The notes beneath the pieces were generated by a model. That model worked only from the letters and a program-made list of their open reading frames with translations. It had not been told where the DNA came from and ran no database searches. A stretch of DNA of 63,781 bases, counting the filler, from Klebsormidium nitens (Eukaryota > Plantae > Klebsormidiophyceae), in assembly GCA_000708835.1 (NCBI GenBank). It is 9 parts of 9 records of this genome, joined end to end, with 100 filler letters (N's around TTAATTAATTAA, not from the genome) between each part and the next. Parts side by side here need not be neighbours in the genome. Positions count along the whole stretch, not along the records: positions 13,795 to 27,762 come from DF238054.1; 8 more parts are not named here. One strand, 5' to 3'. Positions 13,795 to 27,762 of this stretch are shown one piece after another. Both the position numbers and the translations under genes were made by a program. The first letter of the stretch is position 1. Each line of letters begins with the position of its first letter.

Positions 13795-14230
13795 CTTGAG
13801 TTGGACCTCGGGACGGTCCAGATCTCATGCGGCAACCAACGGGCAATTTGGCTCATAAAGCATCCGATCGCTTCGCAGCGGTCGAAGCACATTGACGTGA
13901 TTCACCACTTTGCACGAGAGCGCGTAGCACGTTCGGGGGTCGCGTTCGCGTACTGCAGGACGGAGGACATGACGGCTGACATCATGACCAAGGCGCTGGG
14001 ACCGGGAAAGTTCAAGAAGTGCAAGAGCGAGATAGAAATAGCATAGTCATTGGAATGTGGGGGAGTGTTGAGATACGGGCATTTAGGGACCGAATCTCTG
14101 AGTAATTTTAGTGTTTGAGGATCACGACGTCGACGGTAATTCAACGGTAACGAGTAGTTACGGTTACACGGTTCAATGCGCGCGGATTACAGTGTTACAC
14201 CCGAGTTGCTAGTGGGAGATCGGACACTGT
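13795..14230 (+). mobile_element. 3' end of a Ty1/copia retrotransposon: RNase H C-terminus, PPT and start of 3' LTR
   Basis: RSKHIDVIHHFARERV...TEDMTADIMTKAL (13801-14046). Purine tract GTGGGGGAG (14057-14065), then TGTTGAGATACGGGC at 14066. The 5' part lies in the gap and the LTR end was not found. Confidence 0.9.
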
Positions 14231-14749
14231 AGACAGTTTTGCAGTCACGTTTTTCCAAAGAAAGGCTTTCACAAACGTGGAATTATTTTCTTTGCGTGAT
14301 TTTATTTCTACGTGTCCTTTGGTTCATCTGCCTTGCGCCGCCGCAACGCTGCTGGTGTGAATAGCCCCACTACTGCAAGCCACTTTGTGCTTGTGCAAGT
14401 TCGTGCGCCAAGTGGACAAAAACGTTGGCTGCTGTTAATACTATGAAAAAGTTAAGCTTCTTCTGGTCGGCGTCAACCGCCTTTGTAGAAGGGGCCACAC
14501 AACAAAGACAACGTTTGCGAGTGCGGGTGTACGTTGTGTCGGCCCGTCCTCCCCGACAGCCCCCCCTCTGCCATGTGTCGATACGCCAGCTCCACGTACG
14601 CCAGCAACGCCGCCCTTTGTGGTCTTAAGTATCCTCTGCTCCAAACCCCCCACTCCCTTGTTATACAAACCGGAGTGCATCAACCGGACTGCCTTGTTTG
14701 CAAAGACAAAACCCTCCCCCGGTGGCCCCTCGAAACCAAACCCGGGGAG

Positions 14750-15700
14750 CCTGACGTCGTATGCCAAGTCAACAAGTATGTTCCTACAGGGAGACTCGAT
14801 GCTGCGGGGCGTCCCAAGAAGCGGATCTGCCAGCTCGAGAAAAGCACCTACGCCAGGAATTTGTTCCGCCGCTGAGGCAAAACTCAACGCCAATGCGAGG
14901 CACTTCTACGCGGGCCAAGTGGCAGGACGCCCAATTCCCTAAACTCATCGCCACTTTCCTCAAGCAAATTGTCGTCTCCGTGATCGACTTTGCTGAAAAC
15001 TACTCTTTTCAAGTCAAAACGAGATTCAAAGCATGCATTGGTACAATGATAACGTCGCCATCATGATGCACATCATATACCGACATGCCGAGCAAGCGGT
15101 TGACGGGCAGGAAAGCGGGGGGCGGGCCCAAACATCGTCAAAGACTCGCTACATCTCCGATGACGAGGACCACGGCACCGTTTTCGTCCAGCACTCTTTG
15201 GTCGACCTCCACTCTCCGTGGCTTCAGGCAAATGGGGTCACCATTGACAAGCACGCGTTCTTCTTCTCTGTTTAAGTCTACCCACGCGTTTTACTTCGAC
15301 ACTCAGCACCTTGCCAGGCTTACGAGGGTGCCGGCTGAGTGGACCCTTTTCTTCGAGTCGAGGCACGGGAATGGGAGCACGACGGGGATCCAGGCGCTCT
15401 CATCAAGTTGGCCATCCGCAAGTGGCAAGGAAAGTGGCGATTGCTTGATTGTCAGGACGCCCCAAGACTCACAAACGCGAAGGAAGTCGTCGAGCTCCTC
15501 AAGGCTCGACTCTCCACCGCGGCGCCGTCCTCTTTCCCTAGTCGAGCTGATCAGCGGGCTGAACCAGCCGGTTCTTCCACTCGAACCTCATCTCGATCAA
15601 GGTTGTTGCCAATCTGCCAAAGCTCTATTGTGCAACGGTGCCCGGAACATGGAAGATTCACTTTCTCAAAGGCAGCTCCGCCAATAATCATACGCTGCTT
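14750..15700 (+). mobile_element. Degraded DDD-type DNA transposase, Sola-like (superfamily tentative)
   Basis: Frameshifted segments VIDFAENYSF (14986-15003 core), EIQSMHWYND, YISDDEDH, FKS...EWTLFFESRHG.GEHDG (15364-15386), AIRKWQ. This motif order is typical of DFxENY/HGKGxxDG transposases. The SDG catalytic segment appears damaged. Confidence 0.6.
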
Positions 15701-17279
15701 CGGCACAAGGAGTTGTCTTGCTTTTGCGAGGAATGCTGGGCAGGGAACGAGCTTCTCTGCGCGAATAAAGACCGGGTAAGGGTTTAGGTGACCAACGGGG
15801 AATATCCCGGATGCCTTGTTTGAAGACGAGGATGAGGAGCAAGTGTCTTCGATGGTGATTCTGACGAGCTTTCGGGTTTATTGCAACCGGGTGATACCTT
15901 TGCTGTTCCTTGTGACAACGCCGGCAGATTATATTGTAGCACCGTGCACGGGGTCTGGATTCGGAGTTGATAAGGCGGAGACGGAATGGCTGAGGAACGT
16001 CTGTCATGGTCCGTGATATGGCAGTTGAGTGTCTTTATTTTACTTTGAAGTCGAAGCTTCGTGTTTGCCACAAGTATATAGAGAATGATGTTAAGTAAGC
16101 CTTGACGATCTGCTTTCGCATTGATTAGAAGCGTTCGATTCGAAATGCCCCCCGAGACGGAATTGAAAAGGCGTAGACGACAAAGAAGACCAAGTGCGCC
16201 AACGGGCTACACATGAGAGTTGGAAGATCACGAGAACATTTTGCAAAGGTTGCAAGAAGTTGCGCTGTCAATGTAACACGTTAAAATTTGACAAGTGGGG
16301 TTCTAGAACCGATTTGCTTATGTAATTAGTCTACGGAATTCACACCGCGCCGCATAACATTTAAACGCAATAGCCTCTTGTTAGTAAATGCATGAATGAG
16401 ACAAAGTTATTGGAGAACTTTGCAATTTCAAAGCTACTCTGATCAAGCAATATGTCCCGATTGCTGTGCATACATGTTGAGCCAACATTTGTCCAACTTA
16501 CGTGCAATTACGCTGAAGCTGACATTCCTACACACCAATTCACATATGTAGCTCCTATATCAAACCGCATGTCGAGTATGATGTAGATTAATTATTTGTA
16601 AAAGCTCCGAACTGTAGTTGATGTCTTTGCTCTGTAATTGAATGCGCCCTATGATTAGCTAGCCCAGCCTACTCTGATTGATCGAATTGTAATAGGCTAT
16701 CCAGTTTTTACTTACCAGACTACCTATGCCGCTAGGTATACTAGTCATGCAGCATGTTCTTGTGTGCTAGGCTACTAGCATGCAACCAGTATTACAAGGC
16801 TTAAAACAATGCAATGCAGAATCTAGCCCCTAGCACTGATTTGGACACTTGTACAGGCTACTCGGCGCCATGTTTTCTACTTGTCAGAAGGCTACCAACA
16901 ATGCATTTTGGACTATCCAAGTCGGCGCCGACGACCATTGCGCGCGACAAAATGAGCAGTGCAGCGGCCGCGTCGACCGTCACGCGAAACCGATCTCTGA
17001 CTGGATTGAACTTACCACGTACCGCGCCGATGCCGCAAGTCGCGCACCGCCGGCGCGTCGTCAAAATTTGGTTATTTGACCGTGCTGTACAGCCCGCCCC
17101 AATCCGCCTAGTAGCAAAGCCCTGCTCTTTCCACGGAAGTTCAAATCAACCGCTCCGCCAAACCGTTTTTTGGGGAGAGAGCCTCGCCGTGGTCCGCTGC
17201 ACTGTCCCTCATTTCTAAAGATGGCCGTGATCCCCTCGTTTAAAGTACTTTCCACTCCGGTCCGTTCGCACCGCGTTGA

Positions 17280-18400
17280 GCTTCTTTTCGAATAATGATT
17301 ACAACTGTGAACAGACAAATACGCTCATCGTGAGCGTCATACCAATGCTCGTTCGCTTCATTGGTTGGACCACCAAGAGCTTGCTATTGAGGGTGGCCAA
17401 GTATATACTCTCCGACCTCTTCGACATCACCAACATAGGTTTGCACACGTCCAACATATGCGAATATGCACAAGCTCGAAGAGCTCCGTACTCTCCTTGG
17501 AAAGCGGCTTCCGAGGTTGCTCCCCGAACGATGCAAGCCTTCGCACATCGAAGTCCTCTCCTCTCAAAACGCCTCAGCTTTGACTTTTTGACATACCATG
17601 TTCGTGAATTTGAACGCGCGCCTCGCGGGCCCTCAACCATTTGGGCCAGACTCTCACTGCCGGCGTGCCCCAATCTTTGGTGCCATGTGCACCACAGAGC
17701 TCTCGGCTTCTTGCACAAGCAATCATGTTTCATCGGGCACGTGCCCCAAGCGTTCTTTGTCGCTTTCAAGCTTCAAGAAGCATGACCTCACCGTCCAAAA
17801 ACATTTTGCGCTCGTCATCGCAGAACACATTCTCGGCCCCTACAGTGGTAAGCCTAAAACTCCACCGAGAAAGAGGATTCCCGCAACACCGGAACATTTA
17901 TGCTATCTAATGTGGACAAAGTGAAACTGCTCGCCAGCTGGCGTTCCACATGGATCGCAACTCCATGGTGCCAACCCCGGCTACCGCGAGGAACGCCTCG
18001 TTTCATAACTAAATCGCCCGAATCCCCCGCTCAAGCATCATCGATCATGTGTAGAAAACAAATTCTACTCATTCCCATCATGTGTTGACGACTTCAATCC
18101 ACCCTCCGTTCTTTGTCCCTACTCCGGCTACAAGAGCAACTCCTTGCCGGCCCCCTCCTCCTTTAAGCAATACCTTATGAAATGGTCCAGGCTACTATTG
18201 AAATGTAGCATGATCTTTTTCCCGACGACTTGGGCTTTTCGGGCCCCCAACACAAGCAATCAAAGTTCAGAATGCCGCCTTTCACCCAGCCACCTGTGCC
18301 GCCCAAGTGGGACATTTGGGAATGCTTGTTTTCGATTGGCTCGCGGATCTCAGGCAAGGGCCGTGCGTGACGTAGGCAGTTTTCCAACATTATACCGAGC
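17280..18400 (-). mobile_element. Degraded Ty1/copia internal region (gag knuckle/protease remnants, GAG-pre-integrase, integrase start)
   Basis: ORF 17299..17769 contains WHQRLGH (17665-17685) followed by integrase-like LDVCKPM..SKRSESIYLAT..SKLLVVQPMK. Multiple frameshifts. Confidence 0.75.
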
Positions 18401-18716
18401 TGTCAAGGGAGTAAAGTTGACACTACGGTAGTGCACTGAAGCTACACTAAATATTAGTAATCTAGTATCCAATTTGAAGTGCTGAAGTCACGGGGTTCAT
18501 TATCGCGCGCGACGGTTCAAATTTAAAATAACCGAACCAAAGGACGTACGTGAAACGTTCTTATTCCTGGTGAGCATGGAATCTTGAGGCGCGAGAGCGC
18601 CTGGTGATAAACTTCTCGGAGAGAAGGTGGTGTAAAGATTACACCTTTGGTGGAATTCCAGAAACTACATGTCTCATTCTTGCTCCCTCTTGGGAATTGC
18701 ATGCATAATCTGAGGT

Positions 18717-19866
18717 CACGGGACAGCTACGGTGCAAAGTAGGTCCCGGCAGATTTGCGCCGTCCGGCCGGGAGATTTAGGAGCAGTTCCGTACGAGTGC
18801 GAATTTGCATGTGCGCCAAATCAGGCCACCAGTCGGGGCAGTCAAATTTTACCGGGGCCCAAAATTGCCCTCGATTTGCGCCAAGTTTGCGCCAAGTTAC
18901 AGGTTCTTGAGTTTGCTCCGGAATGACATCAACGGGCTGAATGTTACGTAACGCCGAAACCGCTTGAAGCTGAGATGTTACAGCCAAGCGATATTTTACA
19001 GTAGCCGGGTTTGGCGTATTTACCCTGGATTCCAAGATCGGGTCGACACTTTCTTAGATAACGCTTATGTACCTACCGGTACCAGCTTCAGAGGTTCCAT
19101 GATCAGGTCCGTCGCCTAGCGGTACCTTGTCGGTACAAACCCTTCCGACATCAAATCAAATATGTCAGAGTCAGAATGCGGTAGCATCGTTCCGTACCAG
19201 TTTTCACTATACCGTACATAAATTTACGGTACTAACATAGATCCAGGTACGCGAAGAGAACCCCGGGCGCCCTTACAACTAACAGTTATGACTCAAAGAG
19301 TAGTCGGTTCTCGGAGGTTCCGAGTACGTACCAGACTCGCGGTCCGCGAACAGTGGGTACACTGTACCGGAACGTAACGGTCGAGAGGTTGAAGGTCCGA
19401 AATTTGAAATCTGATGTGAAAAGCTCACGTTGAACTTCAAGATATGGTAGACGCAAAGAAGCTCCTCTTTGGCTACTACGTGGCTACTACTACCTTATTT
19501 TGAGCATAAAAACATGTAGAAATGGAAACTTTCAGTGCAGTGAAGCACACCAAGCTTTTTGTAGACATCAAGGCTGAACTTCTATTCAAGTGGCACCTCT
19601 GTATCTCTACTTGAGGTGCTGCAATATGCAAGCTTAAAAACCCCCATTTTTCAGCTAAAAATGAGCAATTTGGGGCAAAATTCCCCCATCCTGTCCAAAA
19701 CTCGGGGGAATATGGCACGGTCCCCCCCCGAGTTGCTTACGAAGTACCTAGATTTACCCAGTCGTAAATACGCCGAACCGTAGCGATTTCGGACGGCGGC
19801 CGCCTCCGATAAATTCATTCGGCCCCGATTTGCCCTGTCCCGATTTTGCACCGTAGCTGTCCCGTG
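18717..19866. mobile_element. Non-autonomous TIR element (1150 bp) with 22-bp perfect TIRs starting CACGG
   Basis: CACGGGACAGCTACGGTGCAAA at 18717-18738 and its exact reverse complement at 19845-19866. Flanks AGGT/TGGT (possible 4-bp TSD with one mismatch). No transposase ORF inside. Confidence 0.85.
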
Positions 19867-20307
19867 TGGTATATGATATTATGAGTCGCATACTTGCAAT
19901 CCGTGCACATGCATAGACTCAGACACCTTATGCGTGCCTTATGCCCGTTTTGAATTCAACCGAATCCGAATATCCGACGGAGGAACTGGCTCGGGGTTTA
20001 ACTCGCGGCCGTACTGCGCGTTAATGACACAAGTCCGCGCTCGCGACCCGCGAGCGCATAGCTCCCTGCGATGGGCTCGAAAAGCTAGCGTCGGTAGAGT
20101 ACGGCGCTTAGTATCTTACGCATAGTCTGACATGTTACTGGACATCAGACCTTATTACCGCCGGAACAAATTTTGCTGAGGTCGCTAGTATGCGACCTAC
20201 TCTGTTCAGCAGTACCGCCGGTAAGCCAGACTGATTAGTACCTTGCGAATACCGCTGACGACAGCCGAAAATCTTGCGAGGCTCTCGTCACGGCCGTCAA
20301 TGGAAAA

Positions 20308-21000
20308 TCAACGGTTTGCGACAGGGGTGACAAAGCGAGAGGCGGTGGTAGAATAAAGCCCGGGGCTCGGGCAGCTCTGATTTCGTATGCAAAACTTGGA
20401 CCGGCACTCTCTATCAAAGTGCCCAATTTCACAACATTTGTGGCAAGATATTGAGATTGGGCCGTAAATTTGTGTTGTGGTCACTCGATATCGAGTCCGA
20501 TTAACTTGATTCCCAACATCCATGCTCATCAATCATTTGATGGCCCAGCCATATATGCATCATAGGAAAAAACACATAGAGCTCCTTACAAGCGGCTTCC
20601 TTCTCTCCAAATCTTTCTTCAAATGATATATGACAAACCTGTTTCTCTTCTCTATTGTCTCATAAATGTCTTTAGTCCCACTAGACTCATTGGCCTACTG
20701 CGGCTCTTTAACTCAATTCATACATACTTCACAAGGCTCACTAACCTGGATCATAGTCACTTTTAATTCTAGCCAAGTTATATCTTTATTTGCGGCTCAC
20801 ATCATTGACGGTACGTCCACTCAACCGCCTAACCCCCACATTTAACCGCCTAACCGCCGTTTATGCAACTTGCACACAACCGCGCTCATTAGTTCAAACC
20901 CTAATCGGGGCCGAACCCTAATCACACTAGAGTTCGGCCAGGACTATATAAACATCGAATCCCCACACTAGAGGCTCAAGAGTGACACAAAAGCCTTCCC
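20308..21000 (-). mobile_element. Old LTR-retrotransposon remnant (gag zinc knuckle plus LTR-like sequence)
   Basis: CHKCCEIGHFDREC (CX2CX4HX4C) in ORF 20308..20532. The stretch at ~20860-20925 (gcgctcattagttcaaa..ctaa..gggccgaaccctaatcaca) matches ~40850-40900 within the copia LTR. Confidence 0.55.
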
Positions 21001-22162
21001 CGGGCCACCTTTCCCTTCATAGCGTTGTTGAAGTAGCCTTGCAACCTGGCCTCTAACTCTGGTTGCTTGATAGAAAAGTGATCGGGGACTTTTGGGCAAA
21101 GGTTCGATTTTAAGTCGTGAGGTCACATGAAACAACAGAACATGTCAGGGGCGAAGCGTGGCCCTCAACCTTGTAGGCCGAGACGTTCTACGGTTAGAAT
21201 GTAGCTAGGTCATTGTGAATGATTGGCCGCACCACGACAGGTTGCACATCGACTGCACTACCTTTTCGTTTGGATCCACTGCGCTGTTCTGACTAGCCTG
21301 ATAGAGTTGCTCGACGGTGAAAACATTGAATACATACGGATCAGCGTCCTCCTGGAGTTGGCATACTAGTCGAAATTGTCACGTGTAACACATCATCAAC
21401 GTAACATTGGCCGTAGAGGCACAAGTAGACAAGCCTTCGCAAAATTTGCTCGTTGTACGATCAAATTACATAAATCCTGACATCAATGTGCAAATGGCAA
21501 AGTTCCGCCTTGAATTCCGCGCGGCCTGGCCCTTCTCGTTGCCGGGCCCGCAAAGTCCACCTTCCCACGGTATATCCATGTCACCCTTTTCAATGCAGCG
21601 CCTGCGCTCCTCCGAGCGCTGCTCGCTTCAAGAGCGGATCGCCTGGCGTGCTCCTTAATTAACTAGATGGACCGGTACTAGCCCAAGGCAAGTCACCTGT
21701 TTCTCGGCGGCGTCGTTTCGACCGATTATGTCATGTGGAAAGGGTGGCAAGTCAATGATCGTCCCCAGAGCAAACTTACTGGGAGTAGATTATTCAAAAG
21801 AGACCGCCTGACTCTCCAGATTGTGGCATCATACAGAGCTACTGTCTCAGCGGCTAGTTAAATGTACCACCAAAACCCTTTGACATGATAATGAATGCTT
21901 GATCAACCTGGGGATCGGGCCGACACTTATTCAGGAGTCCAAGTACCAGACAATGAAGAACGAACTTATTCTCTACAGCAATTTTGCTTGGCCCAACTTG
22001 CGAATGGCCCATCATTGAGCCGGGAGCTTGAGCACGTGATACGCTACAGGTCTATAAGGCTACGCTGGCCCTATAGCGGATCAGAATACACTTGCGGAAG
22101 CCCTTGTCTCGCTCACCAGCTGCGCTCTCGTAAAAACTGCTTACTTCAGATCAGCACACAAG

Positions 22163-22604
22163 TGTGACCTTGTTCCTTGACCTTCTCCCTCAAGGCCATC
22201 CTTCCTGGTTCAATACGTACAGAACGTACTACACACCCAGGTTGGCATTCCTATCAGGTACTCAGTCGAATCAGTACATGAGACTTGGCCGCATGGATAA
22301 GTCTAGACAGAGCTGAGTCGAGTCATCCCGTCATACATCATCATCCAATGATATGCATTTGTGTCACGTGTGAGTCGTCGCGTCCAATGCGCGCGCCGAC
22401 TGATATGTGTACATCCAGATATACCACGTGTCCGGTAGTGCACATGGGTACGAGTGACAACTAGACTGAGGCGACAAATGAATGTAGCTCAGAATCTTCA
22501 GAACAGCGCTTCAGAACAGATATTCGACTACCCTATTGGATAAGTCTTGCCGAACAGAATTGATACGAGGCCGTCCGAATGGATATGCCACACGGATCGT
22601 AACA
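22163..22604 (-). repeat. Probable 3' LTR of the gypsy element (~442 bp)
   Basis: On the minus strand, the purine tract GGGAAGAGGCGAG (22605-22617) is directly followed by TGTTACGATCCG at 22604. The distal end was chosen at GGTCACA (22163) for its TG..CA imperfect inverted termini and is tentative without the 5' LTR. Confidence 0.6.
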
Positions 22605-22785
22605 CTCGCCTCTTCCCGGGGGATGCCCCCGGGGGGGTCGCCGGATCTGGAGATTGTAAAAACCTACAGATTAGCACAGAGTGCAGAACAGTTACAGAGA
22701 GACACAGAATCAGTATCAGAACACAGTTTTAGTAACCACAGTCAGTCAGTATGCCCAACCAGCACAGCTGAGTCACAAGAGGAGA

Positions 22786-23930
22786 TTAGCGGTTCCGTCG
22801 GACGCGTGTTTCTCCAGGAATTGGTGCAGCTGGGGCAGCTCCTATGCCAGCAGCTCGTCCAATTCGTTGCCAGTACTCTCCTATCACCTCAGGAGCGTTC
22901 GCGACATTACCTTCAGGTTCCCATGAGTTATGTTCTGGACCATAACCCTTCCAGTGAATGAGATACCAGAGGTTTTCCCGTTTGCGATCAGAGAAATGGT
23001 GGTCTAGTATACAGTCGACCTCATATTCCAGATGACCTTCCAACTAATTGGAATAGGTGGGGGTTGGGTTCGCCCATCAGAACGATAAGGCTCCAGAAGA
23101 GAGACGTGGAAAACGGGGTGAATACGCCAGCCCGGATTCAACTCTAGTTTATACGCCACAGAACCCACCTTTTGCACGACAGTGAAGGGATCCACCCAAC
23201 GGGGCGTCAGCTTGCGGCTTCGCTCCGCGTGCTTCAGAATCAGATTTTTGGTACTCAGAAGTACCTTGTCCCCGACAGCGTACGTCATTTCGAGGCGCTT
23301 TTTATCCGCGAATGCTTTTTGTCTCTGTCGAGCTGCAATCAGAATTTTGCGTGCACGGTCATGTAAAGATTGCAGGCGTTCGACAAAAGCAGAGGCGTCA
23401 GAAGGGCGTTTATCCGAAGTCGACACACCCAAGGGAGTGCGAGGATGACGACCAAGGACCAGATGAAACGGTGTATCACGGATGCCTTCGTGGTAGGAGT
23501 TGATGTAGGCGAATTGGGCTCTTGACAGCCATTCGTCCCAGTCAGTCATTGTCGGCGCAATGAAATGACGCAGATAAGCCTCCAACGTTTGATTGGGAAT
23601 TTCCGTTTGACCATCAGTTTGTGCGTGGAAGGCAGATGACATACACAGTCTCGTGCCAAGAAGCGCAGTGACCTCCTGCCAGAACGCACTTGTAAAGCGG
23701 GTATCACGATCAGAAACGAAGGTCTTACTCAGTCCTTGAGCAGCCTGGACGTGATCCACGTACAGCTTGGCAAAGCCCTTGGCTGTAATGGTTTCTGTAC
23801 AGGGCACGAAGATCGCCATCTTCGAGAACCTGTCAACAAAAACACAGATGGTGTCATTACCGCGAGGAGTTAGCGGCAGCTTAGTGATTAAATCATAACT
23901 GACCGAATCAAAAGGCCCGTCAGGTGTAAC
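22786..23930 (-). pseudogene. Gypsy integrase core and C-terminal chromodomain (frameshifted)
   Basis: FVDRFSKMAIFVP, FVSDRDTRFTSAFW, AFHAQTDGQTE, GPY-like WVDPFTVV, HPVFHVSLL, and chromodomain EYEVDCILDH...YLIHWKGYGPEHNSWEP. Confidence 0.9.
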
Positions 23931-26900
23931 TCCAGTGGTTGCATCAGCCCATAAGGTCGGTGACGACGATGCTTATTGCGCTGACACGTGGTACAACTCA
24001 GAACAAAAGAGGCAACATCCGCCGACAAAGATGGCCACCAGAACAGTTTACCTACTGCCCGCAAGGTTTTGCCTGTCCCATAGTGTCCGGAATAAGGGGT
24101 GTCGTGACACTCCTGCAGAATCAGAGATCGAAGATCGGGGTTATCCGGAACCACTATACAGGACCCTCTCATAACAAAACCTTGAGAGTTGACACTCAGT
24201 AGACGATTCTCTGCACTGTTTACATCTCGCAGTACAGAATCTCGCAGCAACTGGCTTTCCCGAAGGATTGCATTCCCTAAGAGTTTGGGAATGTCAAACG
24301 ACAGATCAGAATTGTCCAAGGTGTTGCTCGTCGCAGGGGCAGTCCGGCCAGACTGTTCCCCGCTAGGCGTAGTTCCCCTCCTTGTCACAGCTACCGTGAG
24401 CATAGCAGGAGTCCCTGAAAAGGGATCACAGAGCGTACCTGCCTTCCTTCCGAGATTTGTCCCGGGTTCAGTGGAAGACAGAACGACCAGAGTGTCGAGT
24501 GGATATCTGCTGAGAGGATCCGCGACGTTGTTCTTCTCGGCCCGGAATACCCATTTAATCGGGCCGAAGCGCTGAAGGAACTCAGACCACCTTGCTTGAC
24601 GTCTCGACAGAGTCGGCTGAGTCTGAAAGAATGTATTGGAGACATGGTCAGTGACTACCGTGAACGTAGCACCCTCCAAATAACATCGCCACGTCTTCAG
24701 AGCGTGAACCACAGCAAGCATTTCGCTTTCAGTTGTGTGGTAATTCTTTTCCGCGTCGTTGAGTTTTCTGGACTCGAAGGCAACAAGTTGTCCATCTTGC
24801 AGCAGCACTGCACCCAGACAAACAGCAGACGCGTCAGACACTACTTCATACGGAAGTTTCTCATTGGGCGTACGGAGGAGTGGCGCTTTAGTCAGACAGT
24901 GTTTCAGTGCAAGAAAAGACTGTCGACAGCGGTCAGTCCAAGCCCACGGAGTTTTAGCCCGAGTCAGATTAGTCAGTGGTTCAGCCAGCGAAGCGAAGTC
25001 CTTAATAAACTTCCGAAAGTAGTTAACCAGACCCAGAAATGAGCGTACGTCGTGAACGTTTAGCAGCTCCGGCCAGTCAACAACAGCAGCGACTTTCTTA
25101 GGATCAAGACGGATTCCCTTGGAATTCACGATGTGTCCTAAGAACTTAGTCTCTTCAGAAGCGAAGTTTGACTTTGACTGGCAGACGTAAAAGCGGTTTT
25201 GTCTCAGAATATCTAAGACCTGTCGAACATGCAGTTTGTGTTCTTCAGCGGTCTTAGAGTAGATCAGAATGTCGTCCAGATAGACAACGACAAAACGCCT
25301 CAGAAAAGGATGCAGAACCGAATTCATAACAGACTGAAACGTAGATGGCGCGTTGGTTAACCCCTCAATCAGAACCTTGAATTGAAAATGTCCCATTGGA
25401 GTGCGGAAAGCAGTCTTAGGACGATCTTCTTCAGAGATTAATACCTGATGGTATCCAGAAGTCAGATCAAGGCTAGTAAAGAAGTTTGATCCAGAAACAG
25501 CATCTAGCAAGTCATCGATGCGCGGAATTGGGTACCGGTTCTTAACCGTGATAGCGTTCAGAGCCCTGTAATCTACACAGAGTCGTAACCCTCTGCCGTT
25601 TGGCTCAGGTACGAAGAGAACAGGAGAGCCATACGGAGATTTAGACGGTTCCAAAATTCCTGCTTCCAGAAATGCCGTGACTTGCTTCTTGAGTTCCTCA
25701 TATTCCAGAGGAGACAACCGATACATAGGTCTAAACGGATGAGGATGTCCCGGTTCCGTAGGAATGGAATGACCTTCCTTTTGATCAGGCGGAAGCCCTA
25801 TCGGCAGAGGATCCTTGAACACATCAGAATACTCCGAGACCATTCCAGCAACCCAAGATTCCTTACCGGAAGGGGTACAGATGTCGAAACTGTCGAACGT
25901 TCCCCGAGGGGGCGGTTGACCAGGTTGATCAGAAACAACAGCAGCCAGTACTTCAGGTTCTTCGATGGGTTTGATGACGGCAAGGAACACGCTCAGGCCC
26001 TTCCTGTACGCGCGATTCATCTGCGTAGCACTGAGCACAGTTAGTGGCGTATCACTAACCTCAGGTCTGACCTCCCTGTGCAGAGGAGCTCTAGCTACGG
26101 TAACCCGCCGTCGACTCTTCTTAACCAGTACAACAAAACGCTCAAAATCCAGAATGCACTTATGGCCAGTAATGAATTTCTGACCCAGAATCACATCAAC
26201 CTCGTGGAGCAACGGCATAACAGAGCAGCGAACAGCAGACTGGAAAGTGCCCAACTTCAGATACACGTTTGCCTCGCCATCAGTGGTTACAACCTCGTTA
26301 GAGCCTAACCGAATTTGCCGAGGAGTTGGGTCAACAGAGATTCCAGTTTGCCTCGCAAACTTAGATGAAACAAAGTTCTCCGAAGCTCCAGAGTCGAATA
26401 AGATACTTGCATTCGTGCTAGCGGCCCGACCTGCAAACATCATCCGCAAACCAGGGTTAGAGTTAACCTGTTCAACAGAAAGAACTGCATGATGGATTGC
26501 ACCATCCAGAATTGCTGCAGATTCATCAGTAACAGGAGGCAGATACAAAACACGTAGGCCCTCCTTCGTCACAGTATCTTGCCAAACACCGTCAGCAGAT
26601 TGCTTACGAAAGACAGAGCCACGTGGCAGAAGCAGAATCTCGCTCCAGCCTTTCAGGAGTACAGCTGGAACAGACGCCCTGCAAGGAACAAGCAAGCATG
26701 CAGAAGTAGTCTTGCTCGCTGCAAGATACTCAGATTGAAAATACAATAACCTGTCCCTCAACTCTGCAAGAGAGGGAGCATTGATCCAGACATGCTTTGC
26801 CTTCAGAGGTTGCTTGCAGAAATCATCAGTAGGACACCACTCAGTTGCTATGGAATCAGTTGTCGATTGACTCGGAACTCCAAGATCAAAGACCTTGCCA

Positions 26901-26944
26901 GATAAAGCAATAATGCTTTTAAAGTCATCAGACGAGATGTCCAC
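23888..26944 (-). CDS. Gypsy pol ORF: Dam-like domain, aspartic protease, RT, RNase H, integrase zinc finger
   Basis: ILFDSGASENFV (catalytic D at ~26395), YGSPVLFV, LRLCVDYRALN, YLDD (25271-25282), SDASAVCLGAVL, DHVSN, ADPLSR, and HHCC (HDTPYSGH...CTTC). Confidence 0.95.
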   Translation of the reverse strand: MDISSDDFKSIIALSGKVFDLGVPSQSTTDSIATEWCPTDDFCKQPLKAKHVWINAPSLAELRDRLLYFQSEYLAASKTTSACLLVPCRASVPAVLLKGWSEILLLPRGSVFRKQSADGVWQDTVTKEGLRVLYLPPVTDESAAILDGAIHHAVLSVEQVNSNPGLRMMFAGRAASTNASILFDSGASENFVSSKFARQTGISVDPTPRQIRLGSNEVVTTDGEANVYLKLGTFQSAVRCSVMPLLHEVDVILGQKFITGHKCILDFERFVVLVKKSRRRVTVARAPLHREVRPEVSDTPLTVLSATQMNRAYRKGLSVFLAVIKPIEEPEVLAAVVSDQPGQPPPRGTFDSFDICTPSGKESWVAGMVSEYSDVFKDPLPIGLPPDQKEGHSIPTEPGHPHPFRPMYRLSPLEYEELKKQVTAFLEAGILEPSKSPYGSPVLFVPEPNGRGLRLCVDYRALNAITVKNRYPIPRIDDLLDAVSGSNFFTSLDLTSGYHQVLISEEDRPKTAFRTPMGHFQFKVLIEGLTNAPSTFQSVMNSVLHPFLRRFVVVYLDDILIYSKTAEEHKLHVRQVLDILRQNRFYVCQSKSNFASEETKFLGHIVNSKGIRLDPKKVAAVVDWPELLNVHDVRSFLGLVNYFRKFIKDFASLAEPLTNLTRAKTPWAWTDRCRQSFLALKHCLTKAPLLRTPNEKLPYEVVSDASAVCLGAVLLQDGQLVAFESRKLNDAEKNYHTTESEMLAVVHALKTWRCYLEGATFTVVTDHVSNTFFQTQPTLSRRQARWSEFLQRFGPIKWVFRAEKNNVADPLSRYPLDTLVVLSSTEPGTNLGRKAGTLCDPFSGTPAMLTVAVTRRGTTPSGEQSGRTAPATSNTLDNSDLSFDIPKLLGNAILRESQLLRDSVLRDVNSAENRLLSVNSQGFVMRGSCIVVPDNPDLRSLILQECHDTPYSGHYGTGKTLRAVGKLFWWPSLSADVASFVLSCTTCQRNKHRRHRPYGLMQPLELHLTGLLIRSVMI
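26534..26944 (-). other. Degenerate phage/DIRS-type DNA N6-adenine methyltransferase (Dam)-like domain at the N-terminus of pol
   Basis: SGKVFDL ... DFCKQPLKAKHVWINAPS (26771-26788 = WINAPS) ... TTSACLLVP ... LLPRGSVF ... VLYLPP. This mirrors the Dam pattern (FxLD...WxNPPF...AVxLVP...PxGxxLF). The NPP(F/Y) motif is altered to NAPS. Recognised by eye only. Confidence 0.6.
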
Positions 26945-26997
26945 AGCACTGTTCGAGTGTTCAGTTGCTTCATGTAGCTGTCCTACACTATCTGAAG

Positions 26998-27762
26998 CTA
27001 AGAGACATCCTTCCTGCCCTTCTTGAACTGCTTCTTAGAAACCGAGGGAGTTGTGCGCTCAGGACACTTATCAGCAAAGTGATCTGGGCTAGCACAAATG
27101 TTGCACAGCTTGTTGACTCTACGTCTCTCCTTCTCTTCCTCAGACAGCCGTTGGTTCTTGTGCCCGGAAGCTCCAGAGTTGCCTTTCCAAGGCCCAGCAG
27201 ATGCTCCACGTCCCCGAGGAGGGGATGTGAACTTGCGCTTCCCCGCCATCTTCTCAACCTTGTGACCGCCCGGCTTCCTCTCCCTTTCCAGCCTGGCCTT
27301 GATAGTCGGCCATTGGAGCGTACAATAAGAGATCAGAGAGGACAGAGACGTCCAGCGAGAGCCATCTGGCGACACCCTTGCCAGTTCCCTCAGAGCTGGC
27401 TGCAGACCAGATTTGTGCTTCTCTATCTTAACGGGCTCGTCAGTGACCTCCTTAGACAGATCGGTCATGACCTGCTCGAACTCAGAGTTGTACTCAGAAA
27501 TATCCTGATCATGACCCTGCTTAAGCTTATGATAAGCATCCCAGTAGCCCTGAACCTCTTCCTTCAAACCATAGCCAGAGTACATGGTGTCTTGGAAGAA
27601 AGCACGAGGGTCAGCAATGGGCTCTTCAGAAGATTTGCGAGCATCAAGCTTGCTCTGCCAGAATGATCTGGGCTTGCCAGACAGATGAGAGCTTGCCAGA
27701 CGCAGATAGTCAACATCAGGACAGCCTGCATAATGCTCCTCAACAATGGGAACCCATCTCCC
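26998..27762 (-). CDS. Gypsy gag (5'-truncated by gap) with CCHC knuckle
   Basis: Capsid-like LKQGHDQDISEYNSEF...KHKSGLQPAL and CNICASPDHFADKC. Stop TAG at 26998-27000. Confidence 0.9.
   Translation of the reverse strand, partial: GRWVPIVEEHYAGCPDVDYLRLASSHLSGKPRSFWQSKLDARKSSEEPIADPRAFFQDTMYSGYGLKEEVQGYWDAYHKLKQGHDQDISEYNSEFEQVMTDLSKEVTDEPVKIEKHKSGLQPALRELARVSPDGSRWTSLSSLISYCTLQWPTIKARLERERKPGGHKVEKMAGKRKFTSPPRGRGASAGPWKGNSGASGHKNQRLSEEEKERRRVNKLCNICASPDHFADKCPERTTPSVSKKQFKKGRKDVS

Follow-up and report, generated by a model that had tools for sequence, protein, structure and literature searches.

A probable Dam-derived domain with eroded methyltransferase motifs at the start of Pol in a clade of Ty3/gypsy chromoviruses represented in Klebsormidium nitens

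The DNA analysed here (hereafter the window) is a stretch of 63,781 nucleotides, filler included, that joins nine parts of the Klebsormidium nitens genome assembly GCA_000708835.1. One of these parts, at positions 13795-27762 (DF238054.1), carries on its minus strand a Ty3/gypsy-type retroelement, of which the 3' three quarters are present, and the subject of this study is the first domain of its pol gene. A reading of the window from its sequence alone (the sequence-only reading) had proposed that this pol starts with about 140 residues of a Dam-like adenine methyltransferase domain, placed ahead of a DSGA protease. The segment is indeed there: translation of the minus strand from 26944 downward gives FDL, DFCKQPLKAKHVWINAPS, TTSACLLVP, LLPRGSVF and VLYLPP in that order, followed by the FDSGAS of the protease. 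The range originally proposed, 26534-26944, covers pol residues 1-137, and in an AlphaFold model the folded unit ends at about residue 146 (26507), with a disordered linker at residues 150-160. Our comparisons support descent of this domain from the Dam family (PF05869), and they indicate that its clade has lost three motifs of the methyltransferase pocket while the scaffold of the domain has stayed under purifying selection.

The rest of the element is that of a chromovirus (Table 1). Pfam matches and the coverage by an intact relative (P0002) show the protease, reverse transcriptase (RT), RNase H and DDE integrase of the Ty3/gypsy-type pol that has been described for DAM-carrying long terminal repeat (LTR) elements. 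P0002 aligns to the window pol over residues 2-1351 of 1368 in three frames (tblastn), with no stops inside the aligned pieces, and the two frame changes make the window copy a dead insertion. The chromodomain named in the sequence-only reading is present and follows the integrase, the trait of chromoviruses; in the window copy it lies in a different frame from the rest of pol, and in the intact P0002, P0035 and P0042 it shares a single frame with it. What the window holds of gag is a single stop-free frame that matches positions 190-426 of a 440-residue protein, the gag of a relative (L005), and gives weak Pfam matches to Retrotrans_gag and zf-CCHC. This frame runs in across the piece edge and stops at 26998; pol is already open at about 27037. 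Beyond that edge lie the 5' LTR, the primer-binding region and the start of gag, and a search across the piece for direct repeats of at least 40 nt that could serve as LTRs found none, as expected for an element whose 5' end is outside the piece. Below the pol stop, where a polypurine tract was sought and none was obvious, the 3' end of the element could not be placed.

Table 1. Parts of the retroelement in the window (positions count along the whole window)
Feature	Position	Strand	Details
Domain of methyltransferase fold at the pol N-terminus, probably Dam-derived	26507..26944	-	pol residues 1-146; motif IV is N-A-P-S
pol (Dam-like domain, protease, RT, RNase H, integrase, chromodomain)	22786..27037	-	broken, two frame changes
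gag, C-terminal part (capsid-like region and CCHC zinc knuckle)	26998..27762	-	single frame, stop-free; exits the piece edge
gag/pol overlap, about 37 nt	26998..27037	-	pol in the -1 frame relative to gag
Retroviral-type aspartyl protease (DSGA)	26114..26422	-	PF08284 / PF13650 / PF13975 (Asp_protease_2 / RVP_2), pol residues 175-277
Reverse transcriptase	25127..25591	-	PF00078, E 3e-34, pol residues 452-606
RNase H	24566..24940	-	PF17917 / PF17919, pol residues 669-793
Integrase (H2C2 zinc domain, core, Tf2-type SH3)	23082..24142	-	PF17921 E 1.6e-19, PF00665 weak, PF24626 E 9e-21
Chromodomain, pol C-terminus	22864..23025	-	PF00385, E 2e-16

Conservation in other proteins shows that the stretch is no product of chance. 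A word search with pol residues 1-175 recovered two polyproteins that contain all of it (100% coverage), with identities of 61% and 36%, and an exhaustive search of 1.84e9 (1.84 billion) representatives returned 50 proteins at E<=1e-3, three of them spurious. The relatives are all from metagenomes, of soil and other sources, or from read-archive assemblies. The spurious three (P0026, P0048 and P0051) are long proteins found with phmmer that match the query in five to eight short stretches, and they were left out of the family alignment. All three look like repeat-driven matches, and it is to them that we tentatively attribute the bacterial Ig-like surface-protein domains present in the set of matches. 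The segment is present in every family member that was found, among them four intact full-length pol proteins with the same layout (P0002, P0054, P0035 and P0042). Two of these, P0002 and P0054, are of the type with eroded motifs described below. In the element that encodes P0054 (in L012), the two 530-bp LTRs are 100% identical, the terminus is of the TG..CA type and the primer-binding site begins with TGG; such LTRs, together with gag and pol that are both intact, mark it as a very recent insertion. The same metagenome contig carries two family members side by side (L012:4638-11568 and L012:327-4431), one complete, with intact gag and pol and of the eroded type, and the other with a Dam-like domain 29% identical to that of the window.

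The relationship to Dam was found through these relatives. The sequence-only reading had inferred the fold of phage-type Dam domains for the segment; here that link is supported, and a direct match to the family is not: the window domain has no Pfam match to PF05869 at E<=1, and a search with 180 residues gave no PHROG or NCBIfam match at E<=10 and no PDB sequence match. Among the 51 sequences scanned (the window domain and its 50 matches), however, seven match PF05869, and two of these (P0040 at 32.7 bits and P0052 at 34.7 bits) exceed the gathering cut-off of 28.1 bits. Each of these two has a retroviral aspartyl protease downstream of its Dam match. Five Dam-detectable relatives all match phrog_111 (DNA methyltransferase), with E down to 7.8e-12, and P0040 matches annotated phage Dam genes at E 8e-4 (tblastn). 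A profile of the window clade aligns to a profile of the Dam-detectable clade with 99.0% probability (hhalign, E 3.7e-18, 157 columns), and in a joint alignment with two phage Dam proteins the sequences are collinear over the whole domain, at every conserved block.

Structure prediction agrees with this. The AlphaFold model built from the family alignment has a mean predicted local distance difference test score (pLDDT) of 85.7, with residues 1-145 mostly above 90, and its fold is of the class I methyltransferase type and resembles that of phage Dam. Among the predicted viral structures of BFVD, the top Foldseek matches are phage N6-adenine methyltransferases (probability 1.00, template modelling (TM) score about 0.5, E 4e-5 to 1e-2). 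The likeness to Rossmann-fold methyltransferases that the earlier reading anticipated is thus borne out, and the passing of the PF05869 cut-off by relatives, the profile link, the fold and the collinear alignment together support descent from the Dam family, by a homology that is transitive but strong.

Among solved structures the closest match is a different enzyme. The top Foldseek match in PDB is the N6-adenosine methyltransferase PCIF1 (CAPAM; 6irw, 6irv), at E 9e-4 over 106 columns with a root-mean-square deviation of 3.3 Å, and the next matches are other Rossmann-fold methyltransferases. PCIF1 is an N6-adenine enzyme of the N-P-P-F type. That it is not a DNA methyltransferase, that two relatives have weak PCIF1_WW Pfam matches (E about 0.08) and that the window itself has no direct sequence match to Dam could suggest that the Dam likeness is convergent or an artefact of structure prediction, and that the domain came from elsewhere, for instance from a PCIF1-type methyltransferase of the host. 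We regard this as very improbable, since relatives pass the PF05869 gathering score and match both phrog_111 and annotated phage Dam genes, and the alignment to phage Dam is collinear at each conserved block. The prominence of PCIF1 is better explained by the composition of the database: neither the window-clade profile nor that of the Dam-detectable relatives matched PDB sequences other than through the protease or by chance, and PDB apparently holds no relative of PF05869 that sequence can detect, which would leave PCIF1 as merely the nearest solved fold. At 17% identity and a TM-score of 0.41 on the query, this 700-residue host mRNA-modifying enzyme is a structural neighbour and not a family assignment. 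The weak PCIF1_WW matches occur in P0040 and one other relative, and they are hints that N6-adenine methyltransferase domains of the PF05869 and PCIF1 types are distantly related.

A Dam domain in an element with LTRs and an integrase, which the sequence-only reading took to be new, has already been described. In its available text, a preprint of May 2026 (bioRxiv 10.64898/2026.05.21.726589) describes Ty3/gypsy elements that carry DAM domains, among them a DAM-chromovirus-like clade from chlorophytes, calls these DAM-LTRs the first identification outside DIRS elements, and infers that the DAM copies of LTR elements were captured from DIRS elements. Our literature search beyond this preprint found no other description of DAM-carrying LTR elements. 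The window element resembles the DAM-LTRs, as far as that text describes them, in being a Ty3/gypsy-type element with an integrase and a chromodomain and with a Dam-family domain inside pol, so that a chromatin reader is combined with a module of the methyltransferase type. It differs in the sequence of the domain itself. Elements were detected in the preprint by a match to the Pfam DAM model at E<=1e-5, whereas the window domain belongs to the family by profile homology (hhalign, 99%) and by fold and falls outside that threshold; with no PF05869 match even at E<=1, its clade would be missed by such a screen. The same preprint describes an N-P-P triplet with flanking aromatic residues as well conserved in DAMs, and the window clade, which has lost N-P-P and two further motifs, contradicts this generalisation of a conserved pocket. 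The class, DAM-chromoviruses included, is therefore already known, and what is new is the clade with eroded motifs.

The erosion is coordinated. In a per-protein comparison, the family falls into two groups that differ jointly at three motifs. A minority (P0035, P0037, P0039, P0040, P0041, P0042 and P0052) keeps an L-D-A type motif, N-x-P-F (as N-P-P-F in two members) and a G..LF block, like the phage enzymes, with a few lapses: the aromatic residue is missing from P0037 and the region of the first motif from P0039, and P0042 reads L-D-G and G..VF. The window clade instead has glycine at the acid column, N-A-x-x with neither a proline pair nor an aromatic residue, and G..(V/I)R. Over the family alignment, asparagine is kept at the first position of motif IV in 37 of 41 sequences, and the position after it is alanine in 30 and proline in only 2 of the 41; an aromatic residue closes the motif in 6/41. 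The window has N-A-P-S where the two aligned phage Dam proteins have N-P-P-Y, and it thus departs from the canonical (D/N)-P-P-(Y/F/W). At the acid column of the L-D-A/P type motif, which is aspartate in phage Dam and in the Dam-detectable relatives, glycine is found in 23 of 35 sequences, the window among them, and aspartate in 6/35. The conserved pocket of DAM-LTRs, that is, N-P-P with its flanking aromatics, is absent from the window clade. The suspicion in the sequence-only reading that N-A-P-S marks an inactive domain gains strength from this joint loss of three motifs across a whole clade.

The scaffold, by comparison, has been kept. Positions H51, W53, N55, T80, S81, C83, P107, G109 and Y134 are conserved, with W53, C83, N55, T80, S81 and G109 invariant or nearly so, and length and secondary structure are preserved in relatives down to about 25% identity. 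The ratio of nonsynonymous to synonymous substitution rates (dN/dS) in the domain is 0.16 against the closest copy (L004, dS 0.18) and 0.19 against the 61%-identical relative (L002); for RT in the same pair it is 0.05. These values indicate that the domain is under purifying selection. They bear directly on the possibility that it is a decaying relic, a former Dam that now serves as a functionless spacer between nucleocapsid and protease. Such a relic would account for the loss of the catalytic motifs and for the faster evolution of the domain, which is 34-62% identical in pairs whose RT is 74-86% identical. It would not be expected to show dN/dS well below 1, invariant core residues, a confidently predicted fold, or retention of the domain in an element with identical LTRs, and one would expect a mere spacer to become shorter or to lose its fold. 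We therefore consider decay improbable. The usual unstructured spacer between nucleocapsid and protease is ruled out by the confidence of the fold, the conservation and the dN/dS.

The same constraint could also be read as a sign that the domain has stayed an active adenine methyltransferase whose pocket is non-canonical, and that it places N6-methyladenine (6mA) on the complementary DNA (cDNA) of the element or on an RNA-DNA intermediate, as the preprint proposes for DAM-LTRs. Besides purifying selection, the strong conservation of H51, W53 and N55 around motif IV and of G109 would fit an active enzyme, as would an acidic residue that stands two positions before the lost acid, and the preprint reports that DAM-LTR insertions are enriched in 6mA in three species (bioRxiv 10.64898/2026.05.21.726589). 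Set against this is the joint disappearance of three pocket motifs (the proline pair and the aromatic residue behind the asparagine are missing, and glycine stands in place of the acid), and the finding of N-P-P in almost all of the DAMs sampled in the preprint. We think it unlikely that the domain is still catalytic. The shifted acid is seen in one of our alignments (A3, window pol residues 20-22), where most sequences (25/36) have an aspartate or glutamate two positions upstream if glycine replaces the acid; in members that retain the original acid, threonine is the usual residue at that position. To judge by this covariation, the acid may have been relocated rather than simply lost. As background to motif IV, the canonical (D/N)PP(Y/F/W) is generally regarded as essential in N6-adenine methyltransferases.

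The layout at the end of gag suggests how the domain may be expressed. Three relatives (L001, L002 and L012) share the gag/pol overlap seen in the window. A GGGUUUU heptamer stands directly before the gag stop in L001 (L001:242-248) and L012 (L012:6678-6684), in relatives of both clades, and just upstream of the domain in another (L007:43-49). A slippery heptamer of the form X XXY YYZ was sought in the window overlap at 26998-27037 and none was seen there. The -1 layout, taken with the heptamer of the relatives, points to expression of pol and its Dam-like domain through -1 frameshifting, in which case the domain would be the first part translated after the shift and would be made only in Gag-Pol.

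Taken together, the explanation that we favour, and to which we give somewhat better than an even chance, is that the domain is a Dam-derived, non-catalytic module that has been retained in Gag-Pol. It is the first domain of a Ty3/gypsy chromovirus Pol polyprotein, directly upstream of the protease, and derives from a phage-type Dam (PF05869) domain such as DIRS and DAM-LTR elements carry. The ribosome would shift by -1 at the end of gag and make it as part of Gag-Pol, with which it may be carried into the particle and from which the protease may release it. In phage Dam and the motif-keeping relatives, three motifs line the pocket for cofactor and adenine; all three have changed in the window clade while the scaffold was retained, and this combination of motif loss and constraint suggests a binding or adaptor role: a pseudo-methyltransferase that may bind nucleic acid or a partner, for example the host adenine-methylation machinery. 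The analysis shows the fold of the domain, its homology and position, its presence throughout the family, the loss of motifs and the selective constraint; we infer its catalytic inactivity, its role in binding, its release by the protease and its packaging.

Several points weigh against this explanation. As the window has no direct match, the Dam link passes through intermediates and a predicted structure, and the Foldseek TM-scores are moderate (about 0.4-0.5). The shifted acidic residue found in most members of the clade might substitute for the lost acid, and the asparagine of motif IV and the neighbouring histidine and tryptophan are so strongly conserved that the pocket could still bind a ligand. 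Inactivity is deduced from the motifs alone, and the preprint, in its available text, found no activity in E. coli for retroelement DAMs whose motifs are canonical (bioRxiv 10.64898/2026.05.21.726589); motif status may therefore not predict activity either way.

A more specific form of this explanation, which we put forward tentatively and with rather less confidence, is that a chromovirus clade invisible to Pfam, and seen so far only in metagenomes and read-archive assemblies, has turned Dam into a selected pseudo-enzyme that binds adenine-methylated or target DNA or acts as an adaptor to host 6mA. If so, the domain would be comparable to the inactive partners in eukaryotic methyltransferase complexes, and the element would pair its chromodomain reader with a second reader or an adaptor, and not with a writer. 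It was not until 2026 that LTR retrotransposons with an adenine methyltransferase domain were recognised, and the current view is that they exploit host 6mA chromatin. The present clade shows that the family of DAM elements is wider than a profile-based screen suggests, and that in one lineage the domain has outlived all of its recognisable catalytic motifs. Should the domain prove non-catalytic, LTR elements may profit from the Dam module by something other than methyl transfer, and the negative heterologous assays and the 6mA enrichment of the preprint would need to be interpreted in that light. The window clade and the motif-keeping clade together also provide a set of sequences from which more sensitive profiles could be built.

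Comparison with other systems sets the element apart in architecture as well as in motifs. DIRS1-like elements carry the same Dam-type domain family (their MT domain) in a retroelement, but their recombinase is of the tyrosine type, and neither the aspartyl protease nor the DDE integrase of the window element occurs in them. The window element has none of their traits: it has an aspartyl protease, H2C2 domain, rve core and Tf2-type SH3 domain, and no recombinase family turned up in Pfam scans of it. In DIRS elements the MT domain follows RT/RNase H, and in the window element the domain precedes the protease. The phage-type enzymes (PF05869 / phrog_111) have about 150-170 residues, the same predicted fold and collinear conserved blocks; their LDA-type motif, N-P-P-Y and G..(L)F are replaced in the window, which gives no significant direct match to them, and phage Dam is a free enzyme whereas the window domain is part of the polyprotein of a eukaryotic retroelement. 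Captured enzymatic domains kept in a polyprotein are also known from the cytosine methyltransferases of Gypsy-DNMT3 and EpiLTR elements and from the NADAR domain of Ectocarpus Gypsy lineages, the latter in the same N-terminal region of Pol (PMC5890265, PMC12477816). These have other folds and chemistries, and the available text of the two papers reports no erosion of catalytic motifs (PMC5890265, PMC12477816).

In the flank of the element (13795-22786), 20 reading frames were scanned and gave, apart from the one described next, no informative Pfam match, and neither transfer RNA genes nor Rfam families were detected. An exact look-up of one reading frame of the window gave no match. A reading frame on the minus strand at 17299-17769 has a weak match to the GAG-pre-integrase domain (PF13976, E 3.6e-4), which suggests a remnant of a Copia-type element.

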